A DNA stretch of 64,000 nt from contig JAKMXF010000321.1 of NCBI GenBank assembly GCA_024704765.1, positions 806,001 through 870,000 of the forward strand, read 5' to 3'. This DNA comes from Oopsacas minuta (lineage: Eukaryota; Animalia; Porifera). This document shows, piece by piece, positions 13,377 to 43,968 of this stretch. Made by a program: the position numbers and the translations under genes. Below the pieces are notes generated by a model, which saw only the letters and a program-made list of their open reading frames with translations, did no database searches and was not told the origin of the DNA. Position 1 is the stretch's first letter, and each line of letters starts with the position of its first letter.

Positions 13377-14561
13377 ATGGAAAATGCTAGCCAACCATCT
13401 GTCAAGGATTCTATCCAAATATCTCTCAACAAGACAGACCCAAGATATCTCAATTTGGATAGCTTTAAGGATCACTGGTATTATCCAATTCATATCCTAG
13501 AATCTATGTATACGGTTAGCTGTGTTTTCTGGTTAATCTATGCTGTTTTGGTTTTGATTTTAAATTTGAGGAAAAAATTATTGTTAAGAAAGAAGTTATT
13601 ATTTGATGATTATCAAATTCAAGATGAAATATTCAGGATTGATGAAACTTTTACTCGATTTTCCATTTTTCTTCTGTTTTTCATCTTTGAGTTGTTATTC
13701 TGTCTCTCTACTAACATTTATGGTATGTTATATAGCTTACTAACATTCATTTTACCATCTACAATACTCCCTATAGAAAATATATGTATTACAAAATCAG
13801 ATATATTCATTACAGAAATGTACGAGGATAAATCGATAATTGTATTCCTCAATTGCTTGTTCTGTTTGGAGAATTTTTCATTTTCTATGATGATTTGGCT
13901 GTTTGCTGTTGCCCTCCTGCACTTAAGTAATGCAGCTAGAAATAAACTGAAATTGAAAGAGGTATCTCAATTCCTATTAATCGGGACAGTGTTAAATGTG
14001 GTTACTCTATTATTCATGATTGTTCCTTATACAATTATTTTCGGTAAGATTGCACAGATTTTATTGAGTATTGTCAGTTACTTTATTGTGATTTACATTG
14101 CTAAGAAGAGATACTTTCCAGCAATCAATAGTCGTGTTGTAAATAGAAAAGGTGTATGTAGTTCTAGTGTGTATAAGAAACAGAAGAGGTTTACACGTCA
14201 TTTTAAGCTACTTATCATTTTCTTAATGCTCATATTCCAAATCTTCATTTTGAGAGATGTCATATTCTATGCTGTTTTTCTAGCTTCTGAATCTGTTAGC
14301 TTGGATCCCTGTTGGTTCCGTAACACATTCCATGCTTCTACCATCAATTTATATGTTAATACTGTAAATACATTAATATCTGCTGAAGGATATTTTCTAA
14401 TGTTGGTGCATTTGTTTGATATTATAGGATATTCCTCTTATATTGCGATTAATATCGCAGCTATAAGTTGCGTCATCTTCACTTTAGTAAAACGGGTTCG
14501 CTCAGGTTACAGAAGATATCGTGTGGATAACAACCAGCTGACTAGATCTCTCATCTCCTAG
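13377..14561 (+). CDS. Orphan 7TM membrane protein, family member 1 (394 aa, intronless)
   Basis: Seven hydrophobic segments; family motifs FxFEL...NIYG (TM2), MxWLFxxxLLHLxxAARN (TM3), KRYFPAINSRV (ICL3), PCWF (ECL3), tail YR...SLIS. Confidence 0.85.
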   Translation: MENASQPSVKDSIQISLNKTDPRYLNLDSFKDHWYYPIHILESMYTVSCVFWLIYAVLVLILNLRKKLLLRKKLLFDDYQIQDEIFRIDETFTRFSIFLLFFIFELLFCLSTNIYGMLYSLLTFILPSTILPIENICITKSDIFITEMYEDKSIIVFLNCLFCLENFSFSMMIWLFAVALLHLSNAARNKLKLKEVSQFLLIGTVLNVVTLLFMIVPYTIIFGKIAQILLSIVSYFIVIYIAKKRYFPAINSRVVNRKGVCSSSVYKKQKRFTRHFKLLIIFLMLIFQIFILRDVIFYAVFLASESVSLDPCWFRNTFHASTINLYVNTVNTLISAEGYFLMLVHLFDIIGYSSYIAINIAAISCVIFTLVKRVRSGYRRYRVDNNQLTRSLIS

Positions 14562-14961
14562 CGTACATTAATATCTGCTTTTATCTGTTATAATTGTATA
14601 ACTTGCGTTTCTTTAATATTAAGACTTGTATGTTTATATGACTATTATTTTGTTCGTGAAAATGAATATTTAGAGTATATTATTAACTGGATAATTATTC
14701 CCCAAATTATTATAAAATCAGTATTTTATTACATCTCTGAAGTCTCAGCAAAATGACATAAATAACAGCATAACTTCAAATGGATTACATCTAGTGATCA
14801 CCCATGTAACCCATCGACATGTGAACATTCATATTATTCTATCTATAAAATTTCTTTCTCATTTTTTCATACACTAAATTATTTTTATTAATTTTCATTA
14901 ATTTTCCAAAATATATAATATATTAAGTAACTGTAGTACATCCATTGGTTATAATATATTA

Positions 14962-16170
14962 TCAATAATGTTTTTCAGCAGCAGATAATAAGGGTGTAGT
15001 GCGTGTAGAATATACTTGATAACGATAATGATCTTTTTTGCTATCGCAGTATCTTCTCTGAAGGTATCTCTTTGAAGTGATATATATGAAAAGTAGACTG
15101 ATTAGAATCAAATCAATATAGACGATAAGGTCAATAATATGTCCGAATATTAAGAAGTAGGCACTGATTTTATGAAGAAGAATATTTGTGGACTCTGATA
15201 TGGTGAACATCGGTATTTGATAGGTCACATTAAACCAACAAGGATTTACACAAATAGATTGGAAAATGGCATACAAATTGAAGAAGAAAATATTCTTAAA
15301 GATGTATAGCTCAAAGGTAAATAAGAAGAATGAAACAAGCAGCTTATACTGTTTTAACAATTTCTTCTGTTGTAGATACACATTAGTATTATGGAGATGG
15401 TATGCATCTATAACACGACTATTCATGGCAGGAAAGAATTTCTTCTTAGCAATGAAAAGCACAATGATGAAACTGATTTGTTCCATCCAACTCTGTGCTA
15501 TGGTACCGAATAGACTAGTATATGGAATATATGCTACGGCCACTGTAACAAAATTGATAAGCATGCCTATTAAGATGAAATGAAGGAGACTTTTACTCCT
15601 CAACTCATTTCTAGCAGCATAAGTCAAATGGAGAAGAGAAGCACCAAACAACCAAATCATCATGAAAAATGAAAAATCACCAAACAAAGAGATAATATTC
15701 AGAAATATATTCATAAATCTAGTGTCATATGTAGTCCCGAGAAAACTTTCCGAATACAGAGAACAATTTTGGCCAATTGAGATTCTAATAATTTCAGGAA
15801 TATACAACATATATACTACGAACCCATAAATATTTATTATTAGACTGTATGTAAGTTCAAAGCAGAGAAAAAGCAAAAAGACAGAATTGCGTTGTATTTT
15901 CTCATTTTGGATGAAAATACGATTGTTATAATCGTCTTTGTAGCACAAAGTTAATATTACAAGTCTCTTCTTGTATCTTAATTGTGATCCTAGATCTAAT
16001 ACGACATAAACTAACCAGAATACACACAAGAATGTGTACACTATTGCTAATGCTTGGTCAAGATGATAGATGTTATCATCAACAGAATTCCAAATAGAAA
16101 AAAATTCTGTATTTTGATCTTTATTACTTATTATGTCAGTAGAGTTATTCATCGTATGTCTTAAGTTCAA
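14962..16170 (-). CDS. Orphan 7TM membrane protein, family member 2 (402 aa, intronless)
   Basis: N-terminal NNS sequon and seven TM segments; FLCFELTY..NIYG, QNCSL, MMIWLFGASLLHLTYAARN, FFPAMNSRVIDAYHLH, NPCWF, tail YRY...PLLS. Confidence 0.88.
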   Translation of the reverse strand: MNLRHTMNNSTDIISNKDQNTEFFSIWNSVDDNIYHLDQALAIVYTFLCVFWLVYVVLDLGSQLRYKKRLVILTLCYKDDYNNRIFIQNEKIQRNSVFLLFLCFELTYSLIINIYGFVVYMLYIPEIIRISIGQNCSLYSESFLGTTYDTRFMNIFLNIISLFGDFSFFMMIWLFGASLLHLTYAARNELRSKSLLHFILIGMLINFVTVAVAYIPYTSLFGTIAQSWMEQISFIIVLFIAKKKFFPAMNSRVIDAYHLHNTNVYLQQKKLLKQYKLLVSFFLFTFELYIFKNIFFFNLYAIFQSICVNPCWFNVTYQIPMFTISESTNILLHKISAYFLIFGHIIDLIVYIDLILISLLFIYITSKRYLQRRYCDSKKDHYRYQVYSTRTTPLLSAAEKHY

Positions 16171-16698: not shown

Positions 16699-17844
16699 TC
16701 AGGATAATAAAGGATTAGAACACACTTGATAACGATATCTTTCTCTGTCGTAAAATCTTCTCTTAAAACACTTCTTGGCTGTGACGTACATAATATTTAG
16801 ATTTACAAGAATAAAATTTAAGTAAACAACAAGATCAATCAAGCGAATACATGCAAAACAATAATCGCTGATTTGATTTAGAATCTGCTTAGTAGAATCT
16901 GGTATAGTGAACATAGAGACATGATAGGTGACGTGGAACCAGCAAGGATTATTGCTAATAGAATCTGTAATCGCATACAAGTTGAAGAACACAATATTCT
17001 TTAGAATATACACTTCAAATGTAAACAAGAAAACAAATACAAGCACCTTATACTGTTTTAACAATTTCTTCTGTTGCAGATACACATTAGTACTATGGAG
17101 ATGATATGCATCTATAACACGACTATTCATGGCAGGAAAGAATCTCTTCTTAGCAATGTAGACTACGATAAATAAACTGATTTGATCCATAAATGGTTGT
17201 GCTATGTTACCGAATATATTAATGTATGGTATAAACACGGAAATTATCACTAAGAGATAGATAACTATTCCTAACAAAATGAAAATTAACAGTATTTTTA
17301 CCCTAATTATATTTCTAGCAGCAAAACTCAAATGGAGAATTGAAGCTCCAAACAGCCAGAGCATCATAGAGAATGAAAAATCACGAAACGATGAAATTGA
17401 ATTTTGCAGGATACTAATAAATCTCTCATCGTACACATAACCAATAAATGTGTTAGAATTTAAGGAACAGTTGGTAGCAATTGGGATCTGAATATCTGTC
17501 CATTTGTGGCCTAGAGCTACGACTCCGAAAATATTGATATTCAAGCAGTAGGAAAGCTCAAAGCAGAGAAATACAAGAAAGATAACATACCGAAAAATAG
17601 TTTCTTTCTGCATGATGAGACGATTCGTATAATCGCAAGTGTAATCTTGATACATTAATGAAAGTAGTCTTCTTTTGTTTCGAATTTGTGTAACTATGCT
17701 TGCTATGACGTACGTTACCCACACGATGCATAACAAAGTGTATATTAATCCTAATGCCTGACCGGCATAGAACGCATAATCGATAACACCCCCAATGATC
17801 TCAGATATCTGAGAATTTGAATTGTTAGTAGCTTCTCTAAACAT
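16699..17844 (-). CDS. Orphan 7TM membrane protein, family member 3 (381 aa, intronless; closest paralog of member 2)
   Basis: Same motif set as member 2; ICL3 nearly identical to member 2; tail YRYQVCSNPLLS. Confidence 0.88.
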   Translation of the reverse strand: MFREATNNSNSQISEIIGGVIDYAFYAGQALGLIYTLLCIVWVTYVIASIVTQIRNKRRLLSLMYQDYTCDYTNRLIMQKETIFRYVIFLVFLCFELSYCLNINIFGVVALGHKWTDIQIPIATNCSLNSNTFIGYVYDERFISILQNSISSFRDFSFSMMLWLFGASILHLSFAARNIIRVKILLIFILLGIVIYLLVIISVFIPYINIFGNIAQPFMDQISLFIVVYIAKKRFFPAMNSRVIDAYHLHSTNVYLQQKKLLKQYKVLVFVFLFTFEVYILKNIVFFNLYAITDSISNNPCWFHVTYHVSMFTIPDSTKQILNQISDYCFACIRLIDLVVYLNFILVNLNIMYVTAKKCFKRRFYDRERYRYQVCSNPLLS

Positions 17845-18340: not shown

Positions 18341-19546
18341 ATGTTATTGGAACAACAACAACAACAACAACAACGTTTGTTTATCAATATCTCGAACGGT
18401 AAAAATTCTCTTTTAACTCCAATTGTCGATCATTTGTATTACCTCAACCAAGTTGTTGCAGGATTCTATTCATTACTACTAGTGGTAATTTTCATATCTA
18501 TTTTAAGTTGGATAATTTCGTCTGTCAAACAAAAAAGGAAATTAGAGGCTATAAATAGCACAGATAATACAGAAGATACATGGAATAGTATTGGTGTGTA
18601 TAGAGAACGTATTCTTTCTTTCAGCATTGCTCTTGTACTACTTGTCTTTGAGATGGGATTCTCATTTACTTTTAATGTGATTGGATTCATTTACATTGCA
18701 TTTTCGGGACAAACCAAGGAACTAAATGTGAATATCAGTAATAACTGCGAGCTGACAGCTAATACATATTTAGCTGAAATTTATGGTTCGAATTCAGTGG
18801 ATTATGTTATGTTACCGATTATGGGTGGTTGTGGCAGATTTTGTTTTCTACTTACCATTTGGTTATTCTCTGTGTCTCTTGTTCATCTCAATTATGCCGC
18901 ATGTGAGCTTTATAAACCTAAAGTTTGTCTCTATTGGATTTTATTTGGGGTGTCTGTGGGAATTGTGATGTTCATCTTAATGCTATTAAAGTGGAGTAAT
19001 CTCTTCGCTGTATTCTTCCTGACCACATTAACACAAGGTAGTATGTTCTGTGTGATTTATAATTATGGAAAGTTTTCTACCTCAATGAAGATGAGAATAA
19101 ACGCAGCATATCATTCTAGAAATAAAGAATATTTGAACGAGCAGAAAAAACTGTTTAAGAAATATAGCAATCTTATCCCACTACTATCGTGTATATTTGA
19201 AATATTCATTTTCAAAGACCTGATAGTTTATAACTGCTATTTATTGCTTGAGACGTTCGCTTTGAATTCTTGTTGGTTTCGTGTCACTTTTGGAATTACT
19301 TCAATTATAAATTTATCAGTACCTACAATTAGGATTATGGCTGAAATAGCATTTTACTGTTTGGTTATTGTACGAATATTGGATTTCCTCTTTTTCACTC
19401 TTAATTGCATAGTTTTGTGTTGCTTTTTGTTAAAATCATACATTGGCTTAAGAAAGAAATATAGCAAAGCACTGAGGTATCGTTACAATTCTGAATATTT
19501 GAAGAATCCACTTATATCTAATGCTTCTACTGATCACACCCAATAA
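18341..19546 (+). CDS. Orphan 7TM membrane protein, family member 4 (401 aa, intronless, N-terminal Q7)
   Basis: LVFEMGF..NVIG, NNCEL, TIWLFSVSLVHL, MRINAAYHSRN..YLNEQKKLFKKY, NSCWF, tail RYRY...NPLIS; (CAA)7 at 18353-18373. Confidence 0.85.
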   Translation: MLLEQQQQQQQRLFINISNGKNSLLTPIVDHLYYLNQVVAGFYSLLLVVIFISILSWIISSVKQKRKLEAINSTDNTEDTWNSIGVYRERILSFSIALVLLVFEMGFSFTFNVIGFIYIAFSGQTKELNVNISNNCELTANTYLAEIYGSNSVDYVMLPIMGGCGRFCFLLTIWLFSVSLVHLNYAACELYKPKVCLYWILFGVSVGIVMFILMLLKWSNLFAVFFLTTLTQGSMFCVIYNYGKFSTSMKMRINAAYHSRNKEYLNEQKKLFKKYSNLIPLLSCIFEIFIFKDLIVYNCYLLLETFALNSCWFRVTFGITSIINLSVPTIRIMAEIAFYCLVIVRILDFLFFTLNCIVLCCFLLKSYIGLRKKYSKALRYRYNSEYLKNPLISNASTDHTQ

Positions 19547-19556
19547 TATATTTATT

Positions 19557-20736: not shown

Positions 20737-23700
20737 CTACGGTGTTTTGGCCGCTAAGAAGGTAGCTGCAAACTGTACTATGTAATTGGGAGTACTGTAG
20801 GCGAATATAACGATCAGAAGGATGAGAATGACTAGGAATATCACTAACATAATCCACCATTTATAATGTTTCCAGATTATGTATTTGAAACTCTTCCAGG
20901 GAGAGAGGAAGAAAGGAAACGAGGTAGCAGGTCGGTTTGGTTTCTCAAGGAATGGATTCGCGTTTGGTTCCAGCTGTGCCTCTCCTGCTGGTTTTAGCTC
21001 CGCGTCGTCTGCAGTTAAAATCTCTAATTCCATTTCCACCTTCCCTGTTATCTCTGGATTATTACCATCAGGATTAGCGATAACTGGCCACCAGCCTCGC
21101 ATTCGTTTTCGCTTGAACAAGTTGTCACAATTGCCAAGATCATCCTGCCAGGATACTTGGTTGATAGTACAGCGCCGAGCAGAAGTTACAGGTTTGAAGA
21201 ATCTAGTTAGATTGAATTCCACAGAGCCCAACACGTCGTCGGGACTGAACAGATCATTATCCCACACTTGTAATACTAAAATAGGATCAAGTCTCTTCTC
21301 TGTGCCTTCTATATTCCAAAAGTGTTCTTTCTTCTTTATAACAATTTCCTGTTCAGCCGGTAGATATCTGAAAGGGAATATCAACCTCCAATTGAACATA
21401 CCCTCTCCATCCATGCTACGGTAGTGTACGTCTGTTTTCCTACTTTTATCTTGTCCTCTAAGGAAAGCTTTCACGTATATATCACTCATACGTTCTCCTC
21501 CTATAATACTCCTCTCCTGTAGTATCACATCTTTCGTATTCCATACTACAATCCGTAGAAACATGTCCTGTGGCTTCCTGGGGGTAATATCAATAGGTGG
21601 TGGCATGCTACCTTCCCCTTTAGGGAATACATCTATAAACATGTCTAAGTATCCTTGAGGGAGATCTCCTTGTATAGGATTAATTAGCTTCCTCTGTTCA
21701 ATATGATCTGGCACATGTTCGAATTGATTGAGTACATACAGTGCGAGTCTCTGCTTCGCATTTCCTAGTTCTCGTTTTCTGTTCTTCCGCTCGTCTTTGT
21801 CTTTTATTTTTGGGAACAATTCATCACCTTCAAAATCTTCCAGACAGTAGGTTATACCGCTAATTTCTACCTGTGTACTTCCGTTCCATTTAACTTCTCC
21901 GTGTCCCTCCTCCTTAACATGTTTCTCCAGCAGAGCAGACGGTACCAGGTGATGTCTCCATTTACACGGACCAGCCACGAAGTAGTTCCTAGGCAAACCA
22001 CATGTTGCCATGTATTTAGTCAATAGTCTGTTTTCTAAATCTATAATGGTGTGACCAATTAGATCATCAGCTGATCCAAAATCATGATCCATGATGACAA
22101 GTTTCATTTCATGTTGGTGAGGAAGTCTGGCGTCGAATTCAAACATCTTTCCAAAGAGAGGATTAAGGTTATTAGGAATGTAGTGCTCCTTATCATCAAC
22201 AACCTCTTCTTCTCCAAGCATTACCTTAATGTAGGGATCTGATTTGCCGTTAGGATCTTGTGGAGCTAAGTTTTTACCTCTGATAACGTAAACTCTAACG
22301 GTTACCTCCTGTAGCCCACTTTGAGTGACATCCTTGTAGAGTAGAGGCACACTGTCTTGATCTTCCTCAGGTAGAAAGTATACCTTAACATCACCCTTGA
22401 AAAGACCACATGCATCTGCGTCTCTCTCAGCAGCTTTACCACGACTTAACTGGAAATCTTTGGTCCGGTCTCTGAAATATTTGAATGTCTGTTCAATTTC
22501 TCTCTCATAGTAAATCATAGGTTCAAATCCTTTCTCAACGAATCCAGTAGATTTCTTTTCATCCCCAACTGTAGAGTAGAATCTGCTCCAGAAGTCAAAC
22601 TCATCCCCCTGACTATCTGGATCCTGTGTCCCAACCTCTGAGTCAATAGAAATAGTTACATCCTTGTCACCTCCTGGGTCATCTCCCTGGGATTTCTTCT
22701 TAGGGGATAGAGGTTCAGGCTCCACAGGTTTCTTTGGAGGTGATTTTATCTTAGCTATGTCATTATCAATAGACTTATCATCTGCTAGAGATAGTCTAGG
22801 AGAAAGACACTGTAACGCATTCATAGCAATTTCCTCTGCCTCTTTAGAACCAGGAGTAGGTACAACGAATGATTCAAGAGATTTGATAGTGTGTACACCT
22901 ACGATTGGAGTTCTACCGAATGGTCGCTTGTCGAGTATCTGTATTTCTAACGGAGGCATGTATATCTGTTCCTTCGGTAGCATACAGTCCATGTGTATAC
23001 AGGGATTAGAGAAGTTAGGATTATCAGAGCATTTATCAATTGGATCACTCTCCCGCATGTAATTACCACATACAAGTCGTAATAGAGGATGTTCTACTGA
23101 GATAAGTTCAAACTTCTTCATATCCCTAACTCCCCATGCGAGGGCCTCAACACGCATCGGTACAAGTTTAGGACGGACATTGAATGGTACCAGATGGTAC
23201 TTAGCGTCCTTAGAGAGGGGAGGGATCTCTAGCTCATGCTCGTTCTTACCATCCATCAGGATAAGTTCAAAAGCTCCCAATAACTCGCCTCCCTCCAAAC
23301 TCTGATGAAATATAGAGTACCATTTCAGTCTAATAGGTTCTTTTTCGGGTCCCAAACGGACCTCTGGTGTAGCGAATGTTCTACCCATCAATTCGTTCTT
23401 ACCGATCAAATCCTTATCAAAGAACTCCACTACAACAAGAGGAGGAGAAGCCATGGTTGTCTCAGGGTCTCCGAAAATAGGAATATCTTTAAACTCTACG
23501 GTTTCATCCCAAGTAGGACATACACTAGCTTTTATTGTGTGCGTTTTCTTGCTTTTATTTACAAATGAAACTATAGCATAAGGGTCAGCTAGGCCGCTCT
23601 TATCACCGGAGAGAAGAGCACGTGCTTGATAGATATAGGCTCTTAGAATCCATTTATGTTCCTTCACGAAGTGCATGTACATACGAGGAGATTGTAGTAG

Positions 23701-26700
23701 AGCTTTCTTCTTAGCTTTTTTAGCAGCTTTTTTTTCTTTCTTACTTTTCTTCTTTCCATCATCTTCGCCATCACCCGATCCCTTAAACTTGAATATACAG
23801 GGGGCAGATTTGTCATTAGCCACCATCTTACGTAGCCATCTCCTCCTCCTAAACACATGTTTCCTCTTCTCGATTCTGTAGTAAGGACCCCCGTGAAATA
23901 TTGAGAACTCCCATCCTTCAGTTTCTTTGGTCTTCTGAGCTGATTTGACTTTAGCTTTCAATTCAGGAGATTCTATAGCTCTAATCCTTAATCTCACAAT
24001 TCTTCTTCGCTTCATAATAGAATCACCACGCTCCATAGGTTGGAAATTATCTCTGGATTCAGAATCGTTAGTATACTCCCAACCGTCCTGGTCCACCATC
24101 CTATTAGTGTCTACATTCCAGTCTGCATCCTTCCACACCCATCCATCTGGACACTTAATCTCCTGTGGGGTCTGATACTCAACACCGGAATCATCTTCAA
24201 ATGTAACTGTAACGTTCTCCCAATCCTGATCATCTTCCGTACGCAGTACTACCTCATATGTCTCTTCCTGAATTTCTCGCATTTTAAGCTCAGGGTCATA
24301 GTCAATGTCATCAGCTGATGAGATGAACCAATCTCCGTCCCATCGCCAGCCTTTGGGGGTCTCGAATGATTCTCTAGGCATGGACATGTCACCATAGTTG
24401 TCTGACCAGTCAGGAACTGGAGAAAAAGCTGTACCCCAAGAGAATCCGTGGAAGACATTGTTCTCATAGGTCTCTGCGAATGTAACAACAGTGCCCCCGG
24501 GGATACACTCCTCCCAATTATCCGTGCACTCTTCACGGCCCAACCAAGCAGCGAATCTTACCTGAGCTCCTAACCTATCAGAAGCATCAGCATTTGCATC
24601 CTTTACAGGCTGCCTTAAGAAACGTGTATGCACCTTCCCACAGTTCAAACCTTTAGCCATATGATTAGGGGAGAAGAATATCTCTGAAGCAGGCACACGA
24701 GCTACTGCTACTCTTTCATTATCATGTATCATCCATAGAATTAAATCAGGAATAGAGATTTGTGATTCAACAGCCATAGCTTTTATTCTGTTCAGAAATC
24801 CTACACACTCTTCAATAGCTTCTTCAACTTCAGTAGCATTCTGCCTCAGTGCGTATATCTCATCCTTCAGTACCATGATCTCGTTCTCTCGGTATTTACC
24901 CCATTGTATGTCTAGCTCTGTAGCTCCGTCGAATGACAGCTGAGGCATCGGTTCATTAAGTCCGTTTACAAGATTCTCCAGCATATTGATAACAGCCTGC
25001 GCTACTTTATCAGGAGATACGTCCTTACCTTCTCTAAGCAGATCCTTAATTCCCTTAATCTTCTTCTCCAGTTCACATGATATGTGTAGTAATATGTTAA
25101 GTGATTCTATACGATAAGTGTTATCCTCCCATTGACATGGAATAACACAGCAAGGCTTCTTATCATCCCATGGCAGGAAGTAGTAGTGCCCCTGGTCTGA
25201 TGCAGGTTTAGTTTCCTGTGTGATGCTGGAAGATGGCGGGGCATTAGGATCCTCTCTGTACCCGTAGCTACCCATACTGACTTCAAACTCCACTCCGTTG
25301 CTATGAGGCTTGACTTGAGTTGCGTGGAAGAAAGCTACGAATAATCTGTGCTTGAAACGACGCTGAGTTTTGAGAATAGATCTATGCTCAATAGCTGGGA
25401 TATCTTCTCGCGTTTTGCTCGGATATTTCCCTAAATCCGTGTTCAGCTGTAGGAGAACTCTCCCTCTGAAAGCAACACCCTCTTGTACCCCTTTGTTCAG
25501 ATGATCGTATTGATCTGTGAAGTCTTTGAATTCTCGAGTAGACCCGTAGAAATTGATCCAAGCTGGACCGAAAGTAGGCAGAAATCCGTCATCTCCAGGC
25601 AGAGATATCCTGGGTATCATCAGGAAACTTGTACCAGCTGTATCATCTCTACCTACTCTATCGTAGTCATATAATCTTATTCGTATACGTTCACACATGG
25701 AAGGGAATCGTATACCCATATTTATCTGTTCATTCCATTCAGGGTTACAAGTTGTGAACTTAACACTACTGCTTATCTTATGACCAGCATAGTTAACCTG
25801 TACATACGGGTCTACGAGATCTTTCTTCTCATCGCAATCTTTGCCGAGGAAAGATTTGAAAGACTGGAAGAATGCGGCGTCCATCTGAGGTACATCCTCA
25901 GCTCGGAATACTCTAACCTTGAAGGTAGCAGGCTGTAGACGGACGCCAGAGGGTCTCAAGAGGTTAGCATCTATGTCATCAATATGTGCACTAGAAGAGT
26001 CGTAAGCTGGGAATGGTTTGGGGTCATCTCCTGGTCCCACAACTCCTATACTAATCTTAAGATAACCCTTAGTACCACCAGATCCTATCTCCTTATCAGT
26101 TACTAATAGGACCCATTTCTGTACAAATCCGTGCTCAGGCTCGTCGTATATAGCACCCACGTCTAGCTTGAAGTTACCGATGAGACTATCCTTCATGCTG
26201 AACTTACTATTCACAACCTTCATAACTACAACACTATCAAATAGTTCTTTTGGACGTATCTTGAAGTTGAATACCAGTGTTTCGTCCCATACAGGGTTAG
26301 TTGAGCTTTTGACTGAGGAAGTACTCTTACTCTTACTAGCACAGCAGATGGTACAACAAGGACTGATACTGCCTCCACCTCCTGCTAGTCTACGTGCTTC
26401 AATGCAATGTATGCGTATTTGGAAATCTAGCTCTTTGTTAGGTAGATTATCTCTAGCTTGTCTGTTCTTGTATTTAGCAGCCCTCTTCTGTGCGGATTTG
26501 CTGCTTTTCAATCCTTTAGATTCTCCCATTGCACCAGTACCTTCCTCGCCATCACCCCCTTCTCCATCTCCTCCTTCATCACCCATCTCTCCGTCCATCC
26601 CATCCCCCATATCTCCTCCTGCATCAGGATCCCCTGGATCTCCTCCCGTGTCCCCACCACCACCTCCTGACTCCCCTGCATCCTGAGAAGCTCCCCCGCC

Positions 26701-27102
26701 CCCTCCTGCACCTCCTCCCCCGCTCTTCTGAGGTGCCGTATAACGTATAGACAGGTTAACACTACCCTGTATGGACTTACTAGACTTATCCACTAATTTC
26801 TGTGCTGGAATAGCTTGTGTCCCTGAACGAATAGCTTGTCCTATAGATATTGATGCTTTTCCCATTACCCTATCTCTGATAGTTTCTTTGTCCATTACTA
26901 TCAGTTCAAGAGTTTCTCCTCCGCTTAGATTAGCAGCTATTGGGAATTCTAGTGTCTCTCCCCATTCAGGATCCAGATTGTTGTCGATTACTTTAGTTTT
27001 CTTCTCCTGACCCTGGAATTTCAGTTTAACATAGGGATCACTCTTACCGATCCTTTCCAGGTTTTTGAGGTTGCTGGCACTCACAACCTCAATACTCAGC
27101 AT
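20737..27102 (-). CDS. MYOF: Type I ferlin (myoferlin/dysferlin-like), single exon, 2121 aa
   Basis: C2A (MLSIEVVSASNL...SDPYV), C2B, C2C (FKVRVFRAEDVPQMD), FerI (LPTFGPAWINFYGS), FerA/FerB, nested DysF (GWRWDGDW, DGWEY, RRRRWLR), C2D (RAYIYQARAL), C2E, C2F (SDIYVKAFL...TDVHYRSMDGEGMFNWR) and a C-terminal TM helix. DysF defines type I. The symbol is family-level; one-to-one orthology with a vertebrate paralog is not claimed. Confidence 0.95.
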   Translation of the reverse strand: MLSIEVVSASNLKNLERIGKSDPYVKLKFQGQEKKTKVIDNNLDPEWGETLEFPIAANLSGGETLELIVMDKETIRDRVMGKASISIGQAIRSGTQAIPAQKLVDKSSKSIQGSVNLSIRYTAPQKSGGGGAGGGGGASQDAGESGGGGGDTGGDPGDPDAGGDMGDGMDGEMGDEGGDGEGGDGEEGTGAMGESKGLKSSKSAQKRAAKYKNRQARDNLPNKELDFQIRIHCIEARRLAGGGGSISPCCTICCASKSKSTSSVKSSTNPVWDETLVFNFKIRPKELFDSVVVMKVVNSKFSMKDSLIGNFKLDVGAIYDEPEHGFVQKWVLLVTDKEIGSGGTKGYLKISIGVVGPGDDPKPFPAYDSSSAHIDDIDANLLRPSGVRLQPATFKVRVFRAEDVPQMDAAFFQSFKSFLGKDCDEKKDLVDPYVQVNYAGHKISSSVKFTTCNPEWNEQINMGIRFPSMCERIRIRLYDYDRVGRDDTAGTSFLMIPRISLPGDDGFLPTFGPAWINFYGSTREFKDFTDQYDHLNKGVQEGVAFRGRVLLQLNTDLGKYPSKTREDIPAIEHRSILKTQRRFKHRLFVAFFHATQVKPHSNGVEFEVSMGSYGYREDPNAPPSSSITQETKPASDQGHYYFLPWDDKKPCCVIPCQWEDNTYRIESLNILLHISCELEKKIKGIKDLLREGKDVSPDKVAQAVINMLENLVNGLNEPMPQLSFDGATELDIQWGKYRENEIMVLKDEIYALRQNATEVEEAIEECVGFLNRIKAMAVESQISIPDLILWMIHDNERVAVARVPASEIFFSPNHMAKGLNCGKVHTRFLRQPVKDANADASDRLGAQVRFAAWLGREECTDNWEECIPGGTVVTFAETYENNVFHGFSWGTAFSPVPDWSDNYGDMSMPRESFETPKGWRWDGDWFISSADDIDYDPELKMREIQEETYEVVLRTEDDQDWENVTVTFEDDSGVEYQTPQEIKCPDGWVWKDADWNVDTNRMVDQDGWEYTNDSESRDNFQPMERGDSIMKRRRIVRLRIRAIESPELKAKVKSAQKTKETEGWEFSIFHGGPYYRIEKRKHVFRRRRWLRKMVANDKSAPCIFKFKGSGDGEDDGKKKSKKEKKAAKKAKKKALLQSPRMYMHFVKEHKWILRAYIYQARALLSGDKSGLADPYAIVSFVNKSKKTHTIKASVCPTWDETVEFKDIPIFGDPETTMASPPLVVVEFFDKDLIGKNELMGRTFATPEVRLGPEKEPIRLKWYSIFHQSLEGGELLGAFELILMDGKNEHELEIPPLSKDAKYHLVPFNVRPKLVPMRVEALAWGVRDMKKFELISVEHPLLRLVCGNYMRESDPIDKCSDNPNFSNPCIHMDCMLPKEQIYMPPLEIQILDKRPFGRTPIVGVHTIKSLESFVVPTPGSKEAEEIAMNALQCLSPRLSLADDKSIDNDIAKIKSPPKKPVEPEPLSPKKKSQGDDPGGDKDVTISIDSEVGTQDPDSQGDEFDFWSRFYSTVGDEKKSTGFVEKGFEPMIYYEREIEQTFKYFRDRTKDFQLSRGKAAERDADACGLFKGDVKVYFLPEEDQDSVPLLYKDVTQSGLQEVTVRVYVIRGKNLAPQDPNGKSDPYIKVMLGEEEVVDDKEHYIPNNLNPLFGKMFEFDARLPHQHEMKLVIMDHDFGSADDLIGHTIIDLENRLLTKYMATCGLPRNYFVAGPCKWRHHLVPSALLEKHVKEEGHGEVKWNGSTQVEISGITYCLEDFEGDELFPKIKDKDERKNRKRELGNAKQRLALYVLNQFEHVPDHIEQRKLINPIQGDLPQGYLDMFIDVFPKGEGSMPPPIDITPRKPQDMFLRIVVWNTKDVILQERSIIGGERMSDIYVKAFLRGQDKSRKTDVHYRSMDGEGMFNWRLIFPFRYLPAEQEIVIKKKEHFWNIEGTEKRLDPILVLQVWDNDLFSPDDVLGSVEFNLTRFFKPVTSARRCTINQVSWQDDLGNCDNLFKRKRMRGWWPVIANPDGNNPEITGKVEMELEILTADDAELKPAGEAQLEPNANPFLEKPNRPATSFPFFLSPWKSFKYIIWKHYKWWIMLVIFLVILILLIVIFAYSTPNYIVQFAATFLAAKTP

Positions 27103-32886: not shown

Positions 32887-33888
32887 ACTGCTACACTCAT
32901 GTCAAGTTCTACAAGTATGTCCAAAAAAGTACTACCAAAACACAGGAAAATGAAATTCAGTTGAATTTCTTGGATAATGTTTTGTATTTGCTCCATCATT
33001 TGGTCTTGTTATATACAATTATACCAATTATACAATACACTAGTGTGCGATATAGAGCATGAATGAGTATATAATCAGGTCGACTGATACATATATAGAT
33101 AGTCGCTAGCAAATAGTAGTAGGTTATTCAATATTCGCTAGCGAAGCGCACTTGTAAGAGATTTTTACTATATTAGCTAGAAACGACGGTTGCTTATTGC
33201 CACAACTTCTTTGAATGAGTTTTGGAGTTGTCGAGGTAGATTTTTACTGGATTTCCTTAGAAACAATGCCCTGCTTGTCTACATAACAGTGTTCAGAATG
33301 GGTTATTCACTAGCAGATTGTAATTTAATAACTCCGTTCAACGCGTTGTTAAGGATTTGTCCTACACACAATAGACTCTTGGGTGTACAGCATCAAAAGC
33401 TCTATACTTATAGAGTATATTTATGATGGTAAATTGGTAACAAAATAGTTCGTTTCATAGATTAATTAGTCAAAGTAGTGATTTACGTAATTACGCAATT
33501 ACTAACACCCATTCTGGGAAAGCTTATGTACAAGTTATATCAATACCAGGAAAATTTACAAATCTTAGATGTTCGAATAGAATTCAAATTAAAACCTTTC
33601 AATTAGGAAGAACTGCCAATAAAGTAACGCACAATTCGATTACAAAAGCTGAAGACCAAGCAATCAATGCACTAGCTGGTTACAAATGTCCTGATACAAG
33701 GTAAGGGCTTCCTACTAAAAGTTGCTATAGATTCGCAATAAGCAATGTTATATTACGCTGTAAGGAACGATGCATCCAGATGGTGGCATACTGCAAGCCT
33801 TCCATATATAGCATCACACAGCTAGGAACTATAAATATGGCACGGCTTTATGAAGGTAGATTACATATACTTATTACTCAAGGAAAGG

Positions 33889-34698
33889 ATGATGAACTCT
33901 CTCTCAATCTTATTATTAATTCTCTCATTTACTCTAACGGTATTGAGCTCATCTCTGTCTCAGCAGTGTGCGGGCAGTAACCAAACGTGTCAATTGCTAG
34001 ATACATGCTGTAATTTCAAGGGGAAAGACAATACAGGTTGCTGCCCTTTGAGCAATGCAGTATGTTGTAAAGATCTAGCACACTGTTGTCCTCAGGGCTA
34101 CAAGTGCTCAGATAGTCCTTTACTATGTGAACGACCCAAAGCCAGCCCTGTTAGAAAAACACAGATTCAACAACACACAATCCCTCTACGACGACTAGAG
34201 AAGTACGTGAGTAAGCAGATGATACAGGGAGTAGAGTGTGATGATCAAATAAGTTGGTGTGCTGATGGAGATACGTGTTGTAAACTTGAATCTGGCATGT
34301 GGGGATGTTGTCCGTTGACGAATGCACGTTGTTGTGAAGATGGTGAGCACTGCTGCCCGAAATATTATGAATGCACGAAAACAGATGGTCTTTGCAACCA
34401 AACAGTAACTATGTATAATCATCATATTATACCAGCAGGTATTAAGCAAAAAGCTATGCATATCAAAGATTTCATAGCAAAGCAATTGAGTGATGCTATG
34501 TGCGCAGATGTTTCTGAATGCATACAGAAACACAGCTGTTGTGAACTAGAGGAAGAAGAAAATTACGGCTGTAGTGAAGTTTCAAACGCTATCTGTTGTG
34601 CAGATCGTAAGTCATGGTGCCCTGAAGGATATTCTTGCGATCTCTCCCAAGAGGAGTGCAAACAAGTTACCATTGAAGTTGAACATATAGACATTTGA
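33889..34698 (+). CDS. GRN: Progranulin-like secreted protein with three granulin domains, single exon, ~269 aa
   Basis: The likely start is the ATG at 33889, in frame with the listed ORF, followed by a signal peptide (MMNSLSILLLILSFTLTVLS). Two complete 12-Cys granulin motifs (C-C-CC-CC-CC-CC-C-C, with GCCP..NA.CC.D..HCCP) and a third 10-Cys motif at 34501-34659. Confidence 0.93.
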   Translation: MMNSLSILLLILSFTLTVLSSSLSQQCAGSNQTCQLLDTCCNFKGKDNTGCCPLSNAVCCKDLAHCCPQGYKCSDSPLLCERPKASPVRKTQIQQHTIPLRRLEKYVSKQMIQGVECDDQISWCADGDTCCKLESGMWGCCPLTNARCCEDGEHCCPKYYECTKTDGLCNQTVTMYNHHIIPAGIKQKAMHIKDFIAKQLSDAMCADVSECIQKHSCCELEEEENYGCSEVSNAICCADRKSWCPEGYSCDLSQEECKQVTIEVEHIDI

Positions 34699-34933
34699 GA
34701 TGTGACTTGTTGAGTTTGTGTTCTTATTAGTTCTATTCTCAACACACTATTAGTACGTATATAGATGTAGATCCCATATTATATATTGAAATAACCAGAA
34801 ATAGTAGATTTTATTATGTATGTGTTGACAGCATTAATTATTAAATTCACATAAACATATAAATATTTACAATATTTACTCTCGTTAATACGTAGAGTAC
34901 TCCATAACTTAATAGTATTCGTATTTCAGATGT

Positions 34934-36103
34934 TCAGTATGTCCTAATAACGTTATTACCAATACCGAGTCTGTAACGTGGTATCGGCCTTCTAAACTTC
35001 CAAATTCTAAAAGCGTTTACAATTAACACAACAACGTAGATAGCAGCTAATAACAAGTAGAAGAGAGACCTCATTAATTGGATCACAAATAGAGTTATGT
35101 GTTGTAACATTTGGTAAACGTCAGCCTCCGTTTCAGACAGAGAAATGTGAACATTAATTCCGTATGCTTGGAAGAAACAAGTATTCGATACTATTGTTTC
35201 CACCCACATATGTATTGTGTATATTAAATAGCGTAGGAAGTAGAATTGACATGTCCACCAAATAGTAGGAAACAAAACTTTATAAGATTTGAGCTGATAC
35301 CTAGCTCTCTTTAGGTGAATATACTCATTGTCTCTCTTCAGTTCTATAATCCATTGATTGTACCTGTCACAGAATCTACGGTATTCCCTATAAATCATAA
35401 CTAAATTGAACTGGAAGAATAGACAGAATATAGGATGAGATGCTAATAGTGTGAGTGGATGAAAATTAAGGAATACGAATATAACTCCTTGTATTATACC
35501 AACAGGGATAAACTGATATATCTTCAGCTCAGAAACTCCAAATTGCTGATACAACAGAGACTGCATAAGGACCAGATTCTTCCTCCAAATAGACAAATAC
35601 AAAACCCATACCAATAACAGAAGTAACGCACTGTATATGGGAGATATATTAATGTATACAAAGTTGTCTAGCCCTGGATCGTAAGCTTCTCCTACTGCAG
35701 AACCTCGAGCTAATGTACAGTTTCCAGTGAATTTGAGATAACTAGGATGATTACGAATAGGTTCATCATAGATTGCAACGAATAAAGTCAGAAACAGATT
35801 CAATAGAAAGTATACCAGTTCTATGAGAGCTATTATCAAGAATAGAATTAACTCATATTTCCTGTTTGTGTGATTACTGAGTATGCTCGGATCACAGTCA
35901 GAGTTTGTTCCTGCTTTTATAAACTTTAGAACTCTTTTCAAAGCAAAACATGCGTATACCAAACATATTGCAAGGATAACGAAATGGAAAAATTGGGCAT
36001 ATATGTTAAAGCAAAATAGATAATAGTTTGCCCTCGCGATGGCGAAATAATAGTCTTGCATTAGCGAGATGTTATTAAGATTATTGATTAATTTAGCGTC
36101 CAT
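34934..36103 (-). CDS. Orphan 7TM membrane protein, divergent family member 5 (389 aa, intronless)
   Basis: Seven TM segments; IELVY (TM2 Glu), GNCTL (ECL1 Cys), LVW (TM3), basic ICL3 ending SYK, ETIVSNTCFF (ECL3 Cys), tail PRYR. Confidence 0.8.
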   Translation of the reverse strand: MDAKLINNLNNISLMQDYYFAIARANYYLFCFNIYAQFFHFVILAICLVYACFALKRVLKFIKAGTNSDCDPSILSNHTNRKYELILFLIIALIELVYFLLNLFLTLFVAIYDEPIRNHPSYLKFTGNCTLARGSAVGEAYDPGLDNFVYINISPIYSALLLLLVWVLYLSIWRKNLVLMQSLLYQQFGVSELKIYQFIPVGIIQGVIFVFLNFHPLTLLASHPIFCLFFQFNLVMIYREYRRFCDRYNQWIIELKRDNEYIHLKRARYQLKSYKVLFPTIWWTCQFYFLRYLIYTIHMWVETIVSNTCFFQAYGINVHISLSETEADVYQMLQHITLFVIQLMRSLFYLLLAAIYVVVLIVNAFRIWKFRRPIPRYRLGIGNNVIRTY

Positions 36104-36621
36104 TAATAATGAACTCTGTATTTATACATTAGAGTATTAGCTTACAAATATTGTCAACTCTTCTCACAGGGAAAATCGTAATAGAAATAAACTAATGCAT
36201 AATCAGTAGTTTGAGGTTAGCTCATATGTATTTGTACTAATTATTTGCGTGCTGTTTGAAGTAATTTCCCTGTTTTCACAACATATTTTTTAATTTATGT
36301 GTATGTTAGAATTTGTGGGCTACCTTGGCAAATATTAGGTAGAAAAAATATTTGGGCTCAAAAAAATTCGGTAATTCCATGAATTAGAATAACTCCTGTA
36401 TAATCAATGCAAATATATTACGTAATATTATTTGATTATTATAAAGTTAACTATCAAACAATTACATAAGTAGAAACTCGGAAATACGATCACCTTTTGG
36501 ACCAAAAAATGGTCGTAATTTAGTAGTGACCATATTTCTGTGACAAATCAATCCTAATTTCTATGAGTACAAATCCAACTAGACATATAAATGTGCTCGT
36601 CGATATACTGAGGTAGGCGTT

Positions 36622-37722
36622 CTACGATAAAAAACTTTCCTTCTCATCACTCATACTAGAAAACATCCGATACCTGTACTTAACCTTCTTAGCGCTGTTA
36701 GTAATACTCTTCTTAACTACCCAGATATTCAAAACAAGCAGCAAGCAGTATGCTACAATGTTAATTAACCTCGCAGTTAAAATTATCCCAAAGTTAATAT
36801 CACCGATAAGTCTACTAATTTGTACATCAGGTTTGAACTCCAATGAAATTCCAAACGTTGCATGAAACCAACAAGAATTGAATGTAAGAGTCTCCAACAC
36901 AAGATACAGGTTAAAGAACACACTACTACTGAGGTAGTATAACTGTAATGCAATGAAAATGATAGGAATTACAATGTTATAATCTCTGTACAATTTCTCT
37001 TGCTCATCACTCATATGCTTATTCCTTGTATGATAAGCCTCATTAACTCTACTACCCATGGCTATCTTAAACTTTCTACTCATATACCATGCTAACAGTA
37101 TATTCATCTGTCCTATAGCAGACTGAATAAACACCCCAATGAGGGATGTCCATGGGAGAATACGTAGTGTGAATACTATTATTCCTATTAATAAGCCTAC
37201 CAATACCCATCGCTTTAGTATATTAGGTTGAAGTCGCCCTTGACATACGTGAGTTAGGTGCAGTAGTGATACAGCATAAAACCATACCATCATCATTAAG
37301 AGGGTTGTAGATTGTGTACGTAGGAACACTAGGAAGATTTGTCCGATATTTGTACTGTAGACATGAGCTAAATAGGTTGAGCCATCGAGACTACAGTTAT
37401 CATTGATTTCAATTGGCATGCTTTCGTTATAGTTCCAAACCATTTTGAATATACCATACACATTGTAATCAAAGAAATAACCGAATTCACAAATCAGGAA
37501 TGCTACGAATAGAAAGTAGCGGATAAGATATTCACGATAAGTGAATATTTTCTGTTCATCTATAGAGTCAATACGTGATTTACGATGATAGAATGTTATT
37601 AAATTGTACAGTACATGGAAGAGCCAGTAAATGAGGAGGAGAGTATGTAACCCACATAGAAGTTGAGATGAGTAGTAGAGATAGGAAATAAATTGGTTTT
37701 CAAAATTATTAGCAACTCGCAT
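36622..37722 (-). CDS. Orphan 7TM membrane protein, family member 6 (366 aa, intronless)
   Basis: ICEFGY..YNVYG, DNCSL, MVWFYAVSLLHL, AMGSRVNEAYH, FFNLYLVLETLTFNSCWF, tail YRYR...SFLS. Confidence 0.85.
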   Translation of the reverse strand: MRVANNFENQFISYLYYSSQLLCGLHTLLLIYWLFHVLYNLITFYHRKSRIDSIDEQKIFTYREYLIRYFLFVAFLICEFGYFFDYNVYGIFKMVWNYNESMPIEINDNCSLDGSTYLAHVYSTNIGQIFLVFLRTQSTTLLMMMVWFYAVSLLHLTHVCQGRLQPNILKRWVLVGLLIGIIVFTLRILPWTSLIGVFIQSAIGQMNILLAWYMSRKFKIAMGSRVNEAYHTRNKHMSDEQEKLYRDYNIVIPIIFIALQLYYLSSSVFFNLYLVLETLTFNSCWFHATFGISLEFKPDVQISRLIGDINFGIILTARLINIVAYCLLLVLNIWVVKKSITNSAKKVKYRYRMFSSMSDEKESFLS

Positions 37723-41550: not shown

Positions 41551-41707
41551 GGCCCCGTTCAAACGTTAAGTAACAAATTTCCCTAAATTTTGACCCCCTC
41601 CCTGTGTCATGCTTTTCACCGTTTTGTTATACAAAAAGAAGAAGACTGACACACTCTGCATACCACCCACCTCCCCTTATAGCGTTATCTAACCTTTGAA
41701 CGGGACC
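41551..41707. mobile_element. PIF/Harbinger-like MITE, 157 bp, 3-bp TSD (TGA)
   Basis: tga|ggccccgttcaaacgtta ... taacctttgaacgggacc|tga; 18-bp TIRs with two mismatches; about 175 bp upstream of the TM-IQ-PTB start codon. Confidence 0.75.
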
Positions 41708-42792
41708 TGATAGCTTTTTATAAATTAATATCTAGTACAAAATATTATTAATTTACAAGAATAATTCTGAAAATAATTCGTAATCTGGTTAAGAGTACAA
41801 ATGCTGTAACTTGTGCAAGGCAGTGTATTTAGGTACTTGGTAGGGACCTAATAGTGCCAGTTCAGAAGCCATGAGGGAGAATACAAATTATTATTCCCGA
41901 AGGAGTACATCTTATCCGAGTTCTCCTGTACATGGGGATACTTATATTGTAATGGTAGCTCCTCTTAAGGTGCATATAAATTAATAATTACCCGCGCTAC
42001 TATTTGAGTTAATGCGAGATTAACTCAAATTCTTAAAGTTTGAAATTCAGTAGAATCGGATAAGCGGTATCCCTTCTTATCCGAATATTCTTCCTATAAA
42101 AGAATAGAAATTCAGTTTTTAAGAAAAGTAGGCATAAACCAAATTCTATTTGATTTTAAGTTTAAGAATAAGTGATAAGATTCTCCTCAATCCCAATCCC
42201 AATCCCGGTTAATTTAGTGCTAGGAATTCTCCAGTTTGTGTTAGCAGAATCCTAGCTCCCCTCCTCCTCCTCACAAATTTTGTTACGCTTAATTCAGTAA
42301 ATTATTGTTACTATATAGGGACAGATTCTCAATTTTATGCTCCTTTCATTAAAATCATACGCTTAGAGAAGCGTCCGCCGCTCCTAGATAATTCCTTGGG
42401 TAGCTGTATATTGAGAAATATAATTATTATTAACTGATTAGATATCTATGTCATTCTTGCATAGTCAGTAGTCAGTAGTCAGTACATATTAGGATATTGT
42501 ACTCAACACTACCATCTCCGGACAAATCATAAAATGAAATGAACTGTTCTTATACTTAGTATTATCTAATTAGCTATGATTATATAAGCAAAAATGACTT
42601 AAGCAAACTTAGAAAAGATCGCGAATCATTTACCTCAATGTCGTAACCTACTATTATTATTTAGTAATGAAATTCAAGCACAGTCATCTTTCCGGAAATT
42701 ACACTAATTTCATAATTCTATTTATAATTATGATAATTTCCTATAAATACTGATTAATTCAAAAATTTACAAACACAACACTTCTTGATATT

Positions 42793-43968
42793 ATGTTACC
42801 TAACAATACAATTGAATACTATGTTGCGGGTTTAATTAACAGAGGGGTTAATGCAGCATGTGGTCCCGTGGTAGTGATAACAACATTTTTTCTTCTCATT
42901 CTATCATTCTGTTGGTCCTTATACTTCCTAACTGGCGTAATAAAAGGGTTTAGAAAGAAAGAAGTGTATATTAATCGAGACATGAAAGAAGAAGTGATCA
43001 AAAGTATCCTACAAAACCAAAAAAATAACCAAATTAAGATTTTCATACTATTCGCTATTTGTGCAAGTGAGTGTACTTTCATCGTTTCGTTACTAGTATT
43101 TTCATGTACTCATTATTTAAGAGATAATGAAGTAATAAATCCCAAAAACCTATTCTCTTCTCCATTTCATAAGATATCACTCACGTACTCTGACTCTCTG
43201 TATTCTACATGGAGTCGTTTCCAAAGTACTGTCTGTTTCAATTTCTTCCTCTGCCTTCTATTGTTAATCCGTATACTCACACAGTACATGGCTAATTGTT
43301 ATAGCTTTTTCCACTCAAACTACTCTTTAAAATTCCAATTCATTCAATCTGTTGTCATGCTAATCGCCTTGACCTTAATCGGGACATTTCAAATCACAAT
43401 ATTTCTCTACAGAATACTTTACAATATCTACATTATTTACCAGTTTATATTATTCCTACGGGCCTCTACAAATCTAAGAAAAGTTTTGTATAAAAGATTT
43501 TTCGATGCAAAGGTCCATGAAAACCAGAGTCTACATGTTATAGCATATTATAAGAGAGCACATAAAGAATACAAAATAACTTCAGTTCTGTTAGCTCTTG
43601 CATTATTAGGACATATCACTAGTGTTTGTATTGTCTCACTCAATCAACTAATTGTTGCTCTACTCTATCAGCCTGGAAAATTCGCAGATGTTATTTTCGG
43701 TCATGGTCTTAACATTACATTGAAAAATCTACCTATTTCCCTCAAGGCTTATAACCAATTAATCAGTTCACTGAGCGAAATATCCTTTACACTAGGCATG
43801 TGCATGCTTGTTTCTCCTTACATTTTTGTTACTTTGAACTACATTGTATTCTTTACGAAGAGACGGATTAGATCAACAAAGTATAGATTCACATATTTCT
43901 CTGATCCGGATAAAGTCAAAGCACTTATTTCCAAGCATAACTACACTTATACAATAAATCATTTATAA
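42793..43968 (+). CDS. Orphan 7TM membrane protein, distant subfamily member 7 (391 aa, intronless)
   Basis: NNT sequon and seven TM segments; W..Y in TM1, Glu in TM2 (ASEC), Gln in TM5, KRFFDAKVH (compare SRVIDAYH), EYK before TM6, tail KYRF...ALIS. Lacks the ECL1/ECL3 Cys pair of members 1-6. Confidence 0.78.
   Translation: MLPNNTIEYYVAGLINRGVNAACGPVVVITTFFLLILSFCWSLYFLTGVIKGFRKKEVYINRDMKEEVIKSILQNQKNNQIKIFILFAICASECTFIVSLLVFSCTHYLRDNEVINPKNLFSSPFHKISLTYSDSLYSTWSRFQSTVCFNFFLCLLLLIRILTQYMANCYSFFHSNYSLKFQFIQSVVMLIALTLIGTFQITIFLYRILYNIYIIYQFILFLRASTNLRKVLYKRFFDAKVHENQSLHVIAYYKRAHKEYKITSVLLALALLGHITSVCIVSLNQLIVALLYQPGKFADVIFGHGLNITLKNLPISLKAYNQLISSLSEISFTLGMCMLVSPYIFVTLNYIVFFTKRRIRSTKYRFTYFSDPDKVKALISKHNYTYTINHL

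Follow-up and report, generated by a model that had tools for sequence, protein, structure and literature searches.

Analysis of a 64,000-nucleotide stretch of the genome of the glass sponge Oopsacas minuta (Hexactinellida; contig JAKMXF010000321.1, positions 806,001 to 870,000, hereafter the window) revealed genes of a single membrane-protein family: six are intact, one copy has decayed and a further one is only distantly related. The intact genes are R1 (13377..14561, plus strand, 394 aa), an ORF scored at E 1e-127 by a family HMM that had R1 itself in its training set; R2 (14962..16152, minus strand, 396 aa counted from the first ATG at 16152); R3 (16699..17844, minus strand, 381 aa), whose structure was modelled; R4 (18341..19546, plus strand, 401 aa), likewise an uninterrupted ORF; R5 (34934..36103, minus strand, 389 aa), a divergent and distant member (blastp 1e-12 to family matches); and R6 (36622..37722, minus strand, 366 aa). 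The distant cousin, R7 (42793..43968, plus strand, 391 aa), belongs to a small remote sister branch within the same superfamily. The original prediction had described a family of seven single-exon ORFs. All seven are present at their expected positions and lengths, except that the 402 aa assigned to R2 require an ORF extending up to 16170 that begins at TTG, and the single family holds for R1-R6 but not for R7. An eighth, decayed copy had been overlooked at 11862..12368 (plus strand), where tblastn and HMM searches detect an R3/P0002-like fragment covering part of TM1-TM4, with 49% identity to residues 42-194 of P0002 (tblastn E 2e-28), pieces matching the family HMM at E 2e-8 and 6e-8, and at least nine in-frame stops within its reading frame. 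The family is real, apparently undescribed, lineage-restricted and of GPCR fold, and it is absent from the text of both hexactinellid genome papers.

A family-profile search of 1.84 billion representative proteins returned only 106 clusters, and every cluster checked lacked a Pfam domain or name, which bears out the earlier claim of a lineage-specific family; the automatic UniRef names given to two members are 'G-protein coupled receptors family 1 profile' (P0004) and 'Odorant receptor' (P0003). Neither BLAST nor HMM searches matched R7 to the other six ORFs. Since direct hhalign comparison of R7 with the core is weak (6.7-57% probability), whereas comparison via intermediate subfamilies reaches 96.5-97.8% (reversed-sequence controls, at most 3.4%), R7 is, by profile similarity, a superfamily member outside the core and tied in solely via these intermediates. 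Four sequencing runs contain the region; their contigs cross intergenic DNA at even depth and carry Nextera/TruSeq adapters, and thus resemble genomic DNA; none of the runs listed was RNA-Seq. Poly(A) was not found on a 1.3-kb Logan contig with one distant homologue, which proves nothing on transcription.

The window copies are old. In the tree, each of R1, R4, R5, R6 and R7 pairs with its own orthologue from another assembly and not with a window neighbor. The R1 orthologue (P0148, 53% identity) lies in a tandem array beside THADA-DTWD2 in an ENA assembly, and the R4 orthologue (P0150, 53% identity, clade support 98) on a metagenome contig. As to the origin of the ENA assemblies, KAT8 from one of their contigs is only ~62% identical to its counterpart in any named animal (Oopsacas not being among the matches listed), which is uninformative, and the sample 'BUSC20-1 / SRR11455651' may derive from the Vazella pourtalesii glass-sponge metagenomes (BioProject PRJNA613976, PMC7426153). 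R5 has a syntenic orthologue in L003 (62% identity), adjoined there by granulin and the R6 orthologue (P0143, 68% identity), and the gene order R6-R5-granulin is thereby kept in another species. Values of dN/dS (~0.14-0.26 for R5, 0.13-0.19 for R6 and 0.13-0.26 overall) are rough, since dS is near saturation (1.1-2.6). Contig-level variants comprise 11 synonymous and 5 non-synonymous changes with frame-breaking indels restricted to intergenic DNA, and in the R2 CDS all SNPs are synonymous (8/8) and the single indel is 3 bp. On these sequence comparisons, R1, R4, R5, R6 and R7 are conserved one-to-one subtypes of the putative receptors, and their ligands would probably be conserved as well (endogenous or constant).

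In relatives, as judged from their gene copies, the R2/R3 clade (R2 and R3 are 54-56% identical, depending on the alignment) is instead a duplicating clade that diversifies its outer face. R3-like homologues number more than 100, and one relative has young head-to-tail R3-like arrays (ERZ25072730, ctg83270) with a unit of ~5 kb and 89-92% amino acid identity. Across 116 homologues of the R3 clade, the entropy of the outer loops and outer helix halves is 1.46 and that of the inner side is 0.91 (p = 3.5e-10, in a test assuming independence of related sequences and of sites), and TM3, ICL2 and ICL3 are nearly invariant (0.43-0.53). The variable extracellular face of the original prediction is thus pronounced in the R3-like clade expanded in the relative, but not in orthologue pairs, where the outer face is conserved as much as the inner or more (for example, 0.70 versus 0.58 for R6). 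Similarly, the proposed conserved cytosolic face is strong in the R3-like clade, but the window paralogs show little of it (0.24 identity inside versus 0.21 outside, p = 0.06).

These patterns bear on the idea that the seven window genes are recent tandem products of a chemosensory or microbe-sensing repertoire under fast birth and death. Their tandem layout, the one pseudogene, and the numerous homologues, young arrays and hypervariable outer face of the R3-like clade would all be expected from such a process. However, the window paralogs are only 17-56% identical and mostly nearer to orthologues elsewhere than to one another, synteny is conserved, selection is purifying, orthologue pairs retain their outer faces, and the species-specific clade of Oopsacas amounts to four genes only (R3 and P0002-P0004), making this account unlikely.

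Inspection of the proteins agreed with the predicted seven transmembrane segments: the AlphaFold models of R3 and R7 contain seven long helices each, and the hydropathy profiles of the other five ORFs display a comparable run of hydrophobic peaks. Lys and Arg are abundant in ICL1, in ICL3 and in the C-terminal tail but scarce in ECL1 and ECL3, a positive-inside pattern that, together with sequons located in the N-terminus and ECL1 (NC[ST]), indicates the predicted topology with the N-terminus outside and the C-terminus inside, as had been proposed. The N-terminus is ~30 residues long and domain-free, the long, glycosylatable ECL1 is modelled as a beta-hairpin, there is hardly any ECL2 (~4 residues, without Cys), and TM5-ICL3-TM6 constitutes a long, basic and conserved helical extension, as shown or modelled.

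Residue counts over 74 superfamily sequences revealed a near-universal Glu in TM2 (66/74, with Asp in another 4/74), shown or modelled as buried and present in all seven window ORFs. Less widely shared are a TM1 Trp (53/74), Tyr-Lys (53/74 and 44/74) and Arg (48/74) in ICL3, a TM3 His (35/74) and a TM5 Gln (33/74). The cytosolic end of TM3, the position of DRY in class A receptors, carries His or Tyr, and a Y-R-Y/F ... P-L-L motif is conserved in the C-terminal tail. Cysteines in ECL1 and ECL3 (C126 and C301 in R3 numbering) each occur in 63/74 sequences; 63 sequences have both, 11 have neither and none has a single one, and the pair was lost jointly three separate times on the tree. Because the two cysteines are kept or lost together and never found singly, we infer that a disulfide joins the ECL1 hairpin to ECL3. 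R7 departs from the shared residues listed in the original prediction: it has neither of the loop cysteines, no W...LLH and no Gln in TM5.

A GPCR-like fold is supported by the models, in which the seven-helix bundle superposes on solved GPCRs across TM1-TM7. TM-scores in Foldseek are just 0.3-0.55, and a shape search of the ESM Atlas gave best scores of 0.55-0.59 for GPR143 (ocular albinism) and the 7TM domain of GPCR-PIPK, a likeness at the level of the fold only, with neither a Pfam Ocular_alb or PIP5K match nor a kinase domain. Pfam scans of the seven ORFs, 20 family members and 10 distant members returned noise only. Classes B/adhesion (7tm_2), C (7tm_3) and F (Frizzled) yielded no Pfam match and no ectodomain; in contrast to the 7TM cores of class F (Frizzled/Smoothened) and class B (secretin/adhesion), the sponge proteins carry no cysteine-rich, hormone-binding or GAIN ectodomain on their short N-terminus. 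For insect OR/GR (7tm_6/7tm_7), there was likewise no Pfam match and no such structure among the fold matches, and the predicted topology is N-out. Pfam scans and motif inspection thus uphold the earlier statement that class A motifs, class B/C ectodomains and an insect OR/GR match are absent.

The GPCR fold is found in non-signalling proteins too, and the family could comprise proteins without G-protein signalling that serve endomembrane sorting, scaffold or transport-associated roles, of the GPR137, THH1-TOM1 or LYCHOS kind. ESM feature neighbors include clusters of THH1/TOM1, GPR137_N and PRRT3 (0.89-0.92), LYCHOS is among the fold matches, and the C-terminal tail motif could serve as a sorting signal. 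Against this, shuffled proteins sometimes score as high in the ESM comparison, the Pfam models of the GPR137/THH1-TOM1-TOM3 type (PF06454, PF27607) are unmatched, the fold matches among AFDB clusters and PDB entries are mostly bona fide receptors, and diversification of the outer face over an invariant TM3/ICL2/ICL3 is what one would expect if the proteins bind ligands as receptors; we consider this reading distinctly improbable. Least probable of all is that the family is highly divergent class A (rhodopsin), since, despite the UniRef name of P0004 and a majority of class A receptors among the top Foldseek PDB matches, the 7tm_1 profile matches none of the 26 members scanned at permissive cut-offs of E 1-10 (the seven ORFs at E <= 10, a set of 20 members at E <= 1), profiles from three family alignments found no GPCR among 177,635 PDB sequences (the sole match being a designed TM hairpin, E ~0.01), DRY, CWxP and NPxxY were not found at the relevant positions (TM3 ends in LLHL, and NPxx[YF] strings are confined to ECL3), no proline lies within TM6 or TM7 of R3, and a TM3-ECL2 disulfide is ruled out by the short, Cys-free ECL2.

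The differences from class A extend to the loop architecture. Class A receptors such as prostaglandin EP1, CX3CR1, MRGPRD and GPR55 have no detectable sequence similarity to the sponge family, which is also without the TM6/TM7 proline kinks of that class. Its long, hairpin-bearing ECL1 and vestigial ECL2 are the reverse of the class A arrangement, and its putative disulfide connects ECL1 with ECL3 in place of TM3 with ECL2. A parallel is provided by intronless chemoreceptors that have expanded in single lineages (nematode Srd/Srx/Str, vertebrate TAS2R and cAMP-receptor-like proteins), which are also taxon-restricted, adopt the 7TM GPCR fold, and display tandem arrays, pseudogenes and a variable outer face in expanding clades; Srd-2, TAS2R16 and a cAR-like protein appear among the fold matches of the sponge family. 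However, no relationship to them was detected in sequence, and most window members are conserved single-copy orthologues and not fast-turnover genes.

The best explanation, to which we assign a probability of roughly 0.6, is that the window is part of an old tandem neighborhood of single-exon genes encoding putative cell-surface receptors of a glass-sponge-lineage GPCR-fold family. Such receptors would have their ligand-binding site in an outer vestibule, and the conserved face made up of TM3, ICL2 and ICL3 would relay the signal to a cytosolic partner common to the family, most simply a heterotrimeric G protein. Oopsacas has 8 G-alpha genes (PMC10280926). The mechanism of coupling has no precedent from which it could be read, since the proteins lack the activation motifs of class A. 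A bolder extension of the cell-surface receptor proposal, which we offer tentatively and regard as doubtful, is that the family constitutes a separate, glass-sponge-only GPCR class on par with classes A-F, with putative G-protein coupling by way of a switch that uses the TM2 Glu, the TM3 His and the conserved ICL3 helix instead of DRY and NPxxY, and gating by a lid stapled by the ECL1-ECL3 disulfide, and that it may supply much of the repertoire of sensory and signalling receptors of a syncytial, neuron-free animal.

To our knowledge, orthologues of bilaterian rhodopsin-type receptors are missing from sponges, and glass sponges coordinate their behavior via syncytia, without neurons; for these reasons, their receptor repertoire is largely uncharted. 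The family offers concrete candidates for glass-sponge sensing, and the split into conserved single-copy subtypes and a clade that expands and diversifies its outer face gives a guide to which of them to screen first with endogenous ligands and which with environmental ones. Lastly, a conserved GPCR-fold family that is an orphan in sequence and has a loop architecture of its own tests how far GPCR signalling logic needs the canonical motifs.

The seven single-exon ORFs predicted to encode seven-transmembrane (7TM) receptors are all present in the window, with the ends and lengths originally reported: R1 (13377-14561, + strand), R2 (14962-16170, - strand), R3 (16699-17844, - strand), R4 (18341-19546, + strand), R5 (34934-36103, - strand), R6 (36622-37722, - strand) and R7 (42793-43968, + strand). 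Because the G+C content of the region is ~30%, ORFs of 366-402 codons without stops are not a product of chance. The 402-aa ORF of R2 opens at TTG, and its first ATG, at 16152, gives a 396-aa protein starting with an NNS sequon. R3 is identical to an O. minuta protein, and its closest named relatives are O. minuta LOD99_11768, LOD99_11810 and LOD99_11811. Six-frame HMM and tblastn scans of the window revealed an eighth, fragmentary copy at 11862-12368 (+ strand), which spans TM1-TM4, is 49% identical to the Oopsacas R3 paralogue P0002 and carries at least nine in-frame stops; no further family copies were detectable in these scans.

Other genes share the window. A complete ferlin of 2121 aa (20737-27102, - strand) is encoded by one uninterrupted ORF with five C2 matches, FerI, FerB, a ferlin dsRBD-like domain and Ferlin_C, at a G+C content (0.38-0.44) clearly above the flanking 0.30. 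A 2260-aa single-ORF protein (970-7752, - strand) has a URGCP/RHD3-type GTPase domain in its middle and a C-terminal vWA domain. A Ser/Asn-rich ORF of 799 aa (45340-47739, - strand) has a TTG start and no Pfam domain, and its initial residues resemble the end of a kinase domain, so it probably represents the final exon of a longer gene.

The original prediction placed all seven ORFs in one family. This holds for R1-R6, where similarity is strong among R1, R2, R3, R4 and R6 and weak for R5 (blastp 1e-12 to family hits), while R7 gave no match to the other six by BLAST, or by HMM at E <= 10, and reached 6.7% against the R1-R6 core in a first profile-profile comparison. When the family profile was searched against 1.84 billion representative proteins, just 106 clusters were recovered, full-length weak hits included, and these were split into subfamilies for alignment with hhalign. 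The core aligned with an intermediate subfamily at 99.9%, and the latter with the small family of R7 (10 proteins) at 97.8% (E 1e-12, 338 columns); subfamilies C and D aligned with the R7 family at 96.5-96.6%, and column-reversed controls gave <= 3.4% in every case. These links and the low controls argue that R7 is, at the level of sequence profiles, a genuine yet remote branch of the R1-R6 superfamily, visible through hhalign intermediates only. R7 retains W..Y in TM1, Glu in TM2, Arg in ICL3, Y-K before TM6 and Y-R-F in the tail, but has no Cys pair, no W...LLH motif and no Gln in TM5. One of the 10 proteins of its family is the paralogue P0122 (82% identity), on the same contig outside the window, whose annotation gives a 631-aa 'MCM10-like' protein with an Mcm10 zinc finger; at a relative's locus (L007) a separate ORF close to an R7-like gene carries an Mcm10 zinc finger, and the fusion in the Oopsacas gene model is probably false. 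The family appears confined to glass sponges, a restriction based on the lack of matches elsewhere in very large protein sets and not on named taxon sampling.

Pfam gave no match for the seven ORFs, 20 family members or 10 distant members, and profiles of three alignments matched no receptor among all PDB sequences. The AlphaFold2 model of R3, built from a 54-sequence alignment, is very confident (pLDDT 92.8, pTM 0.89) and has seven long helices, a 45-residue ECL1 with a beta-hairpin at 119-129, an ECL2 of ~4 residues, and TM5 and TM6 reaching far into the cytosol; the R7 model (pLDDT 84.8) follows the same plan without the ECL1 hairpin. For R3 and R7, the models thus bear out the predicted count of seven TM segments, and charge distribution and sequons support the predicted N-out/C-in topology. 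Foldseek searches of PDB, Swiss-Prot models and AFDB clusters gave GPCRs only among the matches listed, at weak scores (E 9e-5 to 1e-2, TM-scores 0.3-0.55), and an ESM Atlas shape search gave TM 0.5-0.6 to GPR143, melanocortin receptors and a GPCR-PIPK core, so that the modeled fold is a GPCR fold with no known class preferred. A very divergent class A offshoot would share this fold; however, D/ERY, CWxP and NPxxY, which belong to class A GPCRs, are all missing from the positions concerned, in line with the original claim, with LLHL at the end of TM3, and R3 has no Pro in TM6 or TM7. A second alternative is a protein with the GPCR fold but no signalling role, comparable to GPR137/TOM1/LYCHOS, which the fold would likewise accommodate.

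Among 74 superfamily sequences, 63 have both an ECL1 Cys (mostly in the context N-C-S/T, itself a glycosylation sequon) and an ECL3 Cys (in N-x-C-W-F), 11 have neither and none has a single one. The 11 Cys-less sequences occupy three separate tree positions (the R7 family and the homologues P0145 and P0156), and this co-loss supports a putative ECL1-ECL3 disulfide. One assembled contig of run X1 has C>T at 16943 (R3 codon 301), which would change the invariant ECL3 Cys to Tyr; the contig ends 35 bases away and the site adjoins a joint to 19459, so the change may be an assembly or paralogue artefact.

The proposed pattern of variable outer and constant inner faces is right only for an expanding clade. 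Among the six window paralogs, conservation was 0.24 in cytosolic versus 0.21 in outer loops (p = 0.06), with TM3 (0.41-0.51) and ICL3 best kept and ECL3 close behind, and in orthologue pairs the outer side was at least as conserved as the inner (R6: 0.70 vs 0.58). In contrast, the R3-like clade, with >100 members in ENA assemblies, including head-to-tail arrays with a ~5 kb unit and 89-92% aa identity, has an entropy of 1.46 in outer loops and outer helix halves versus 0.91 inside (p = 3.5e-10), TM3, ICL2 and ICL3 being almost invariant. One such array (L011; ENA ERZ25072730 ctg83270, 2.5 Mb) has ~5-kb units with R3-like genes of 390-391 aa, adjacent units being 93.5% identical over the CDS and ~300 bp of 3' flank, and small NHL-repeat ORF fragments between copies.

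In the ML tree, R1, R4, R5, R6 and R7 each form a separate group with sequences of other assemblies (SH-aLRT 83-100), while R2 clusters with P0132/P0134 and R3 with three further genes of Oopsacas. A granulin gene with three Pfam Granulin repeats (33850-34698, + strand) lies beside the R5/R6 pair, and ENA ERZ25069837:ctg27584, from another species, carries orthologues of R6 (68%), R5 (62%) and granulin (57%; 14491-15258) in the order and relative orientation of window 33850-37722, as well as THADA-DTWD2 adjoining a five-gene family array that includes an R1 orthologue. Orthologue-pair dN/dS was 0.13-0.26, with dS near saturation and similar values for the neighbouring granulin. In four public runs from a single sample, which appear to be genomic DNA, 16 CDS positions differed from the window, 11 of them synonymously (including all eight of those in R2); the sole CDS indel was 3 bp, and five intergenic indels measured 1, 1, 1, 9 and 10 bp. 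Tree partners, synteny, dN/dS and variants together indicate, from sequence comparison, that the window receptor genes are old and have been retained under purifying selection; a fast chemoreceptor repertoire, which the R3-like arrays might suggest, describes them poorly.

The best reading of the window genes is a lineage-restricted family of GPCR-fold receptors. Full-text literature searches found no published description of it; the Oopsacas and Aphrocallistes genome papers do not mention it, and the retrieved passages of a 2025 GPCR-family survey that included the Oopsacas proteome contain nothing similar. In such a receptor family, the conserved single-copy subtypes would probably sense constant ligands, with one clade prone to expansion and diversification of its outer face. 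The TM3/ICL2/ICL3 surface, conserved in all members, would serve a common cytosolic partner, which we infer to be a G protein because of the GPCR fold and the eight G-alpha genes of Oopsacas (PMC10280926).
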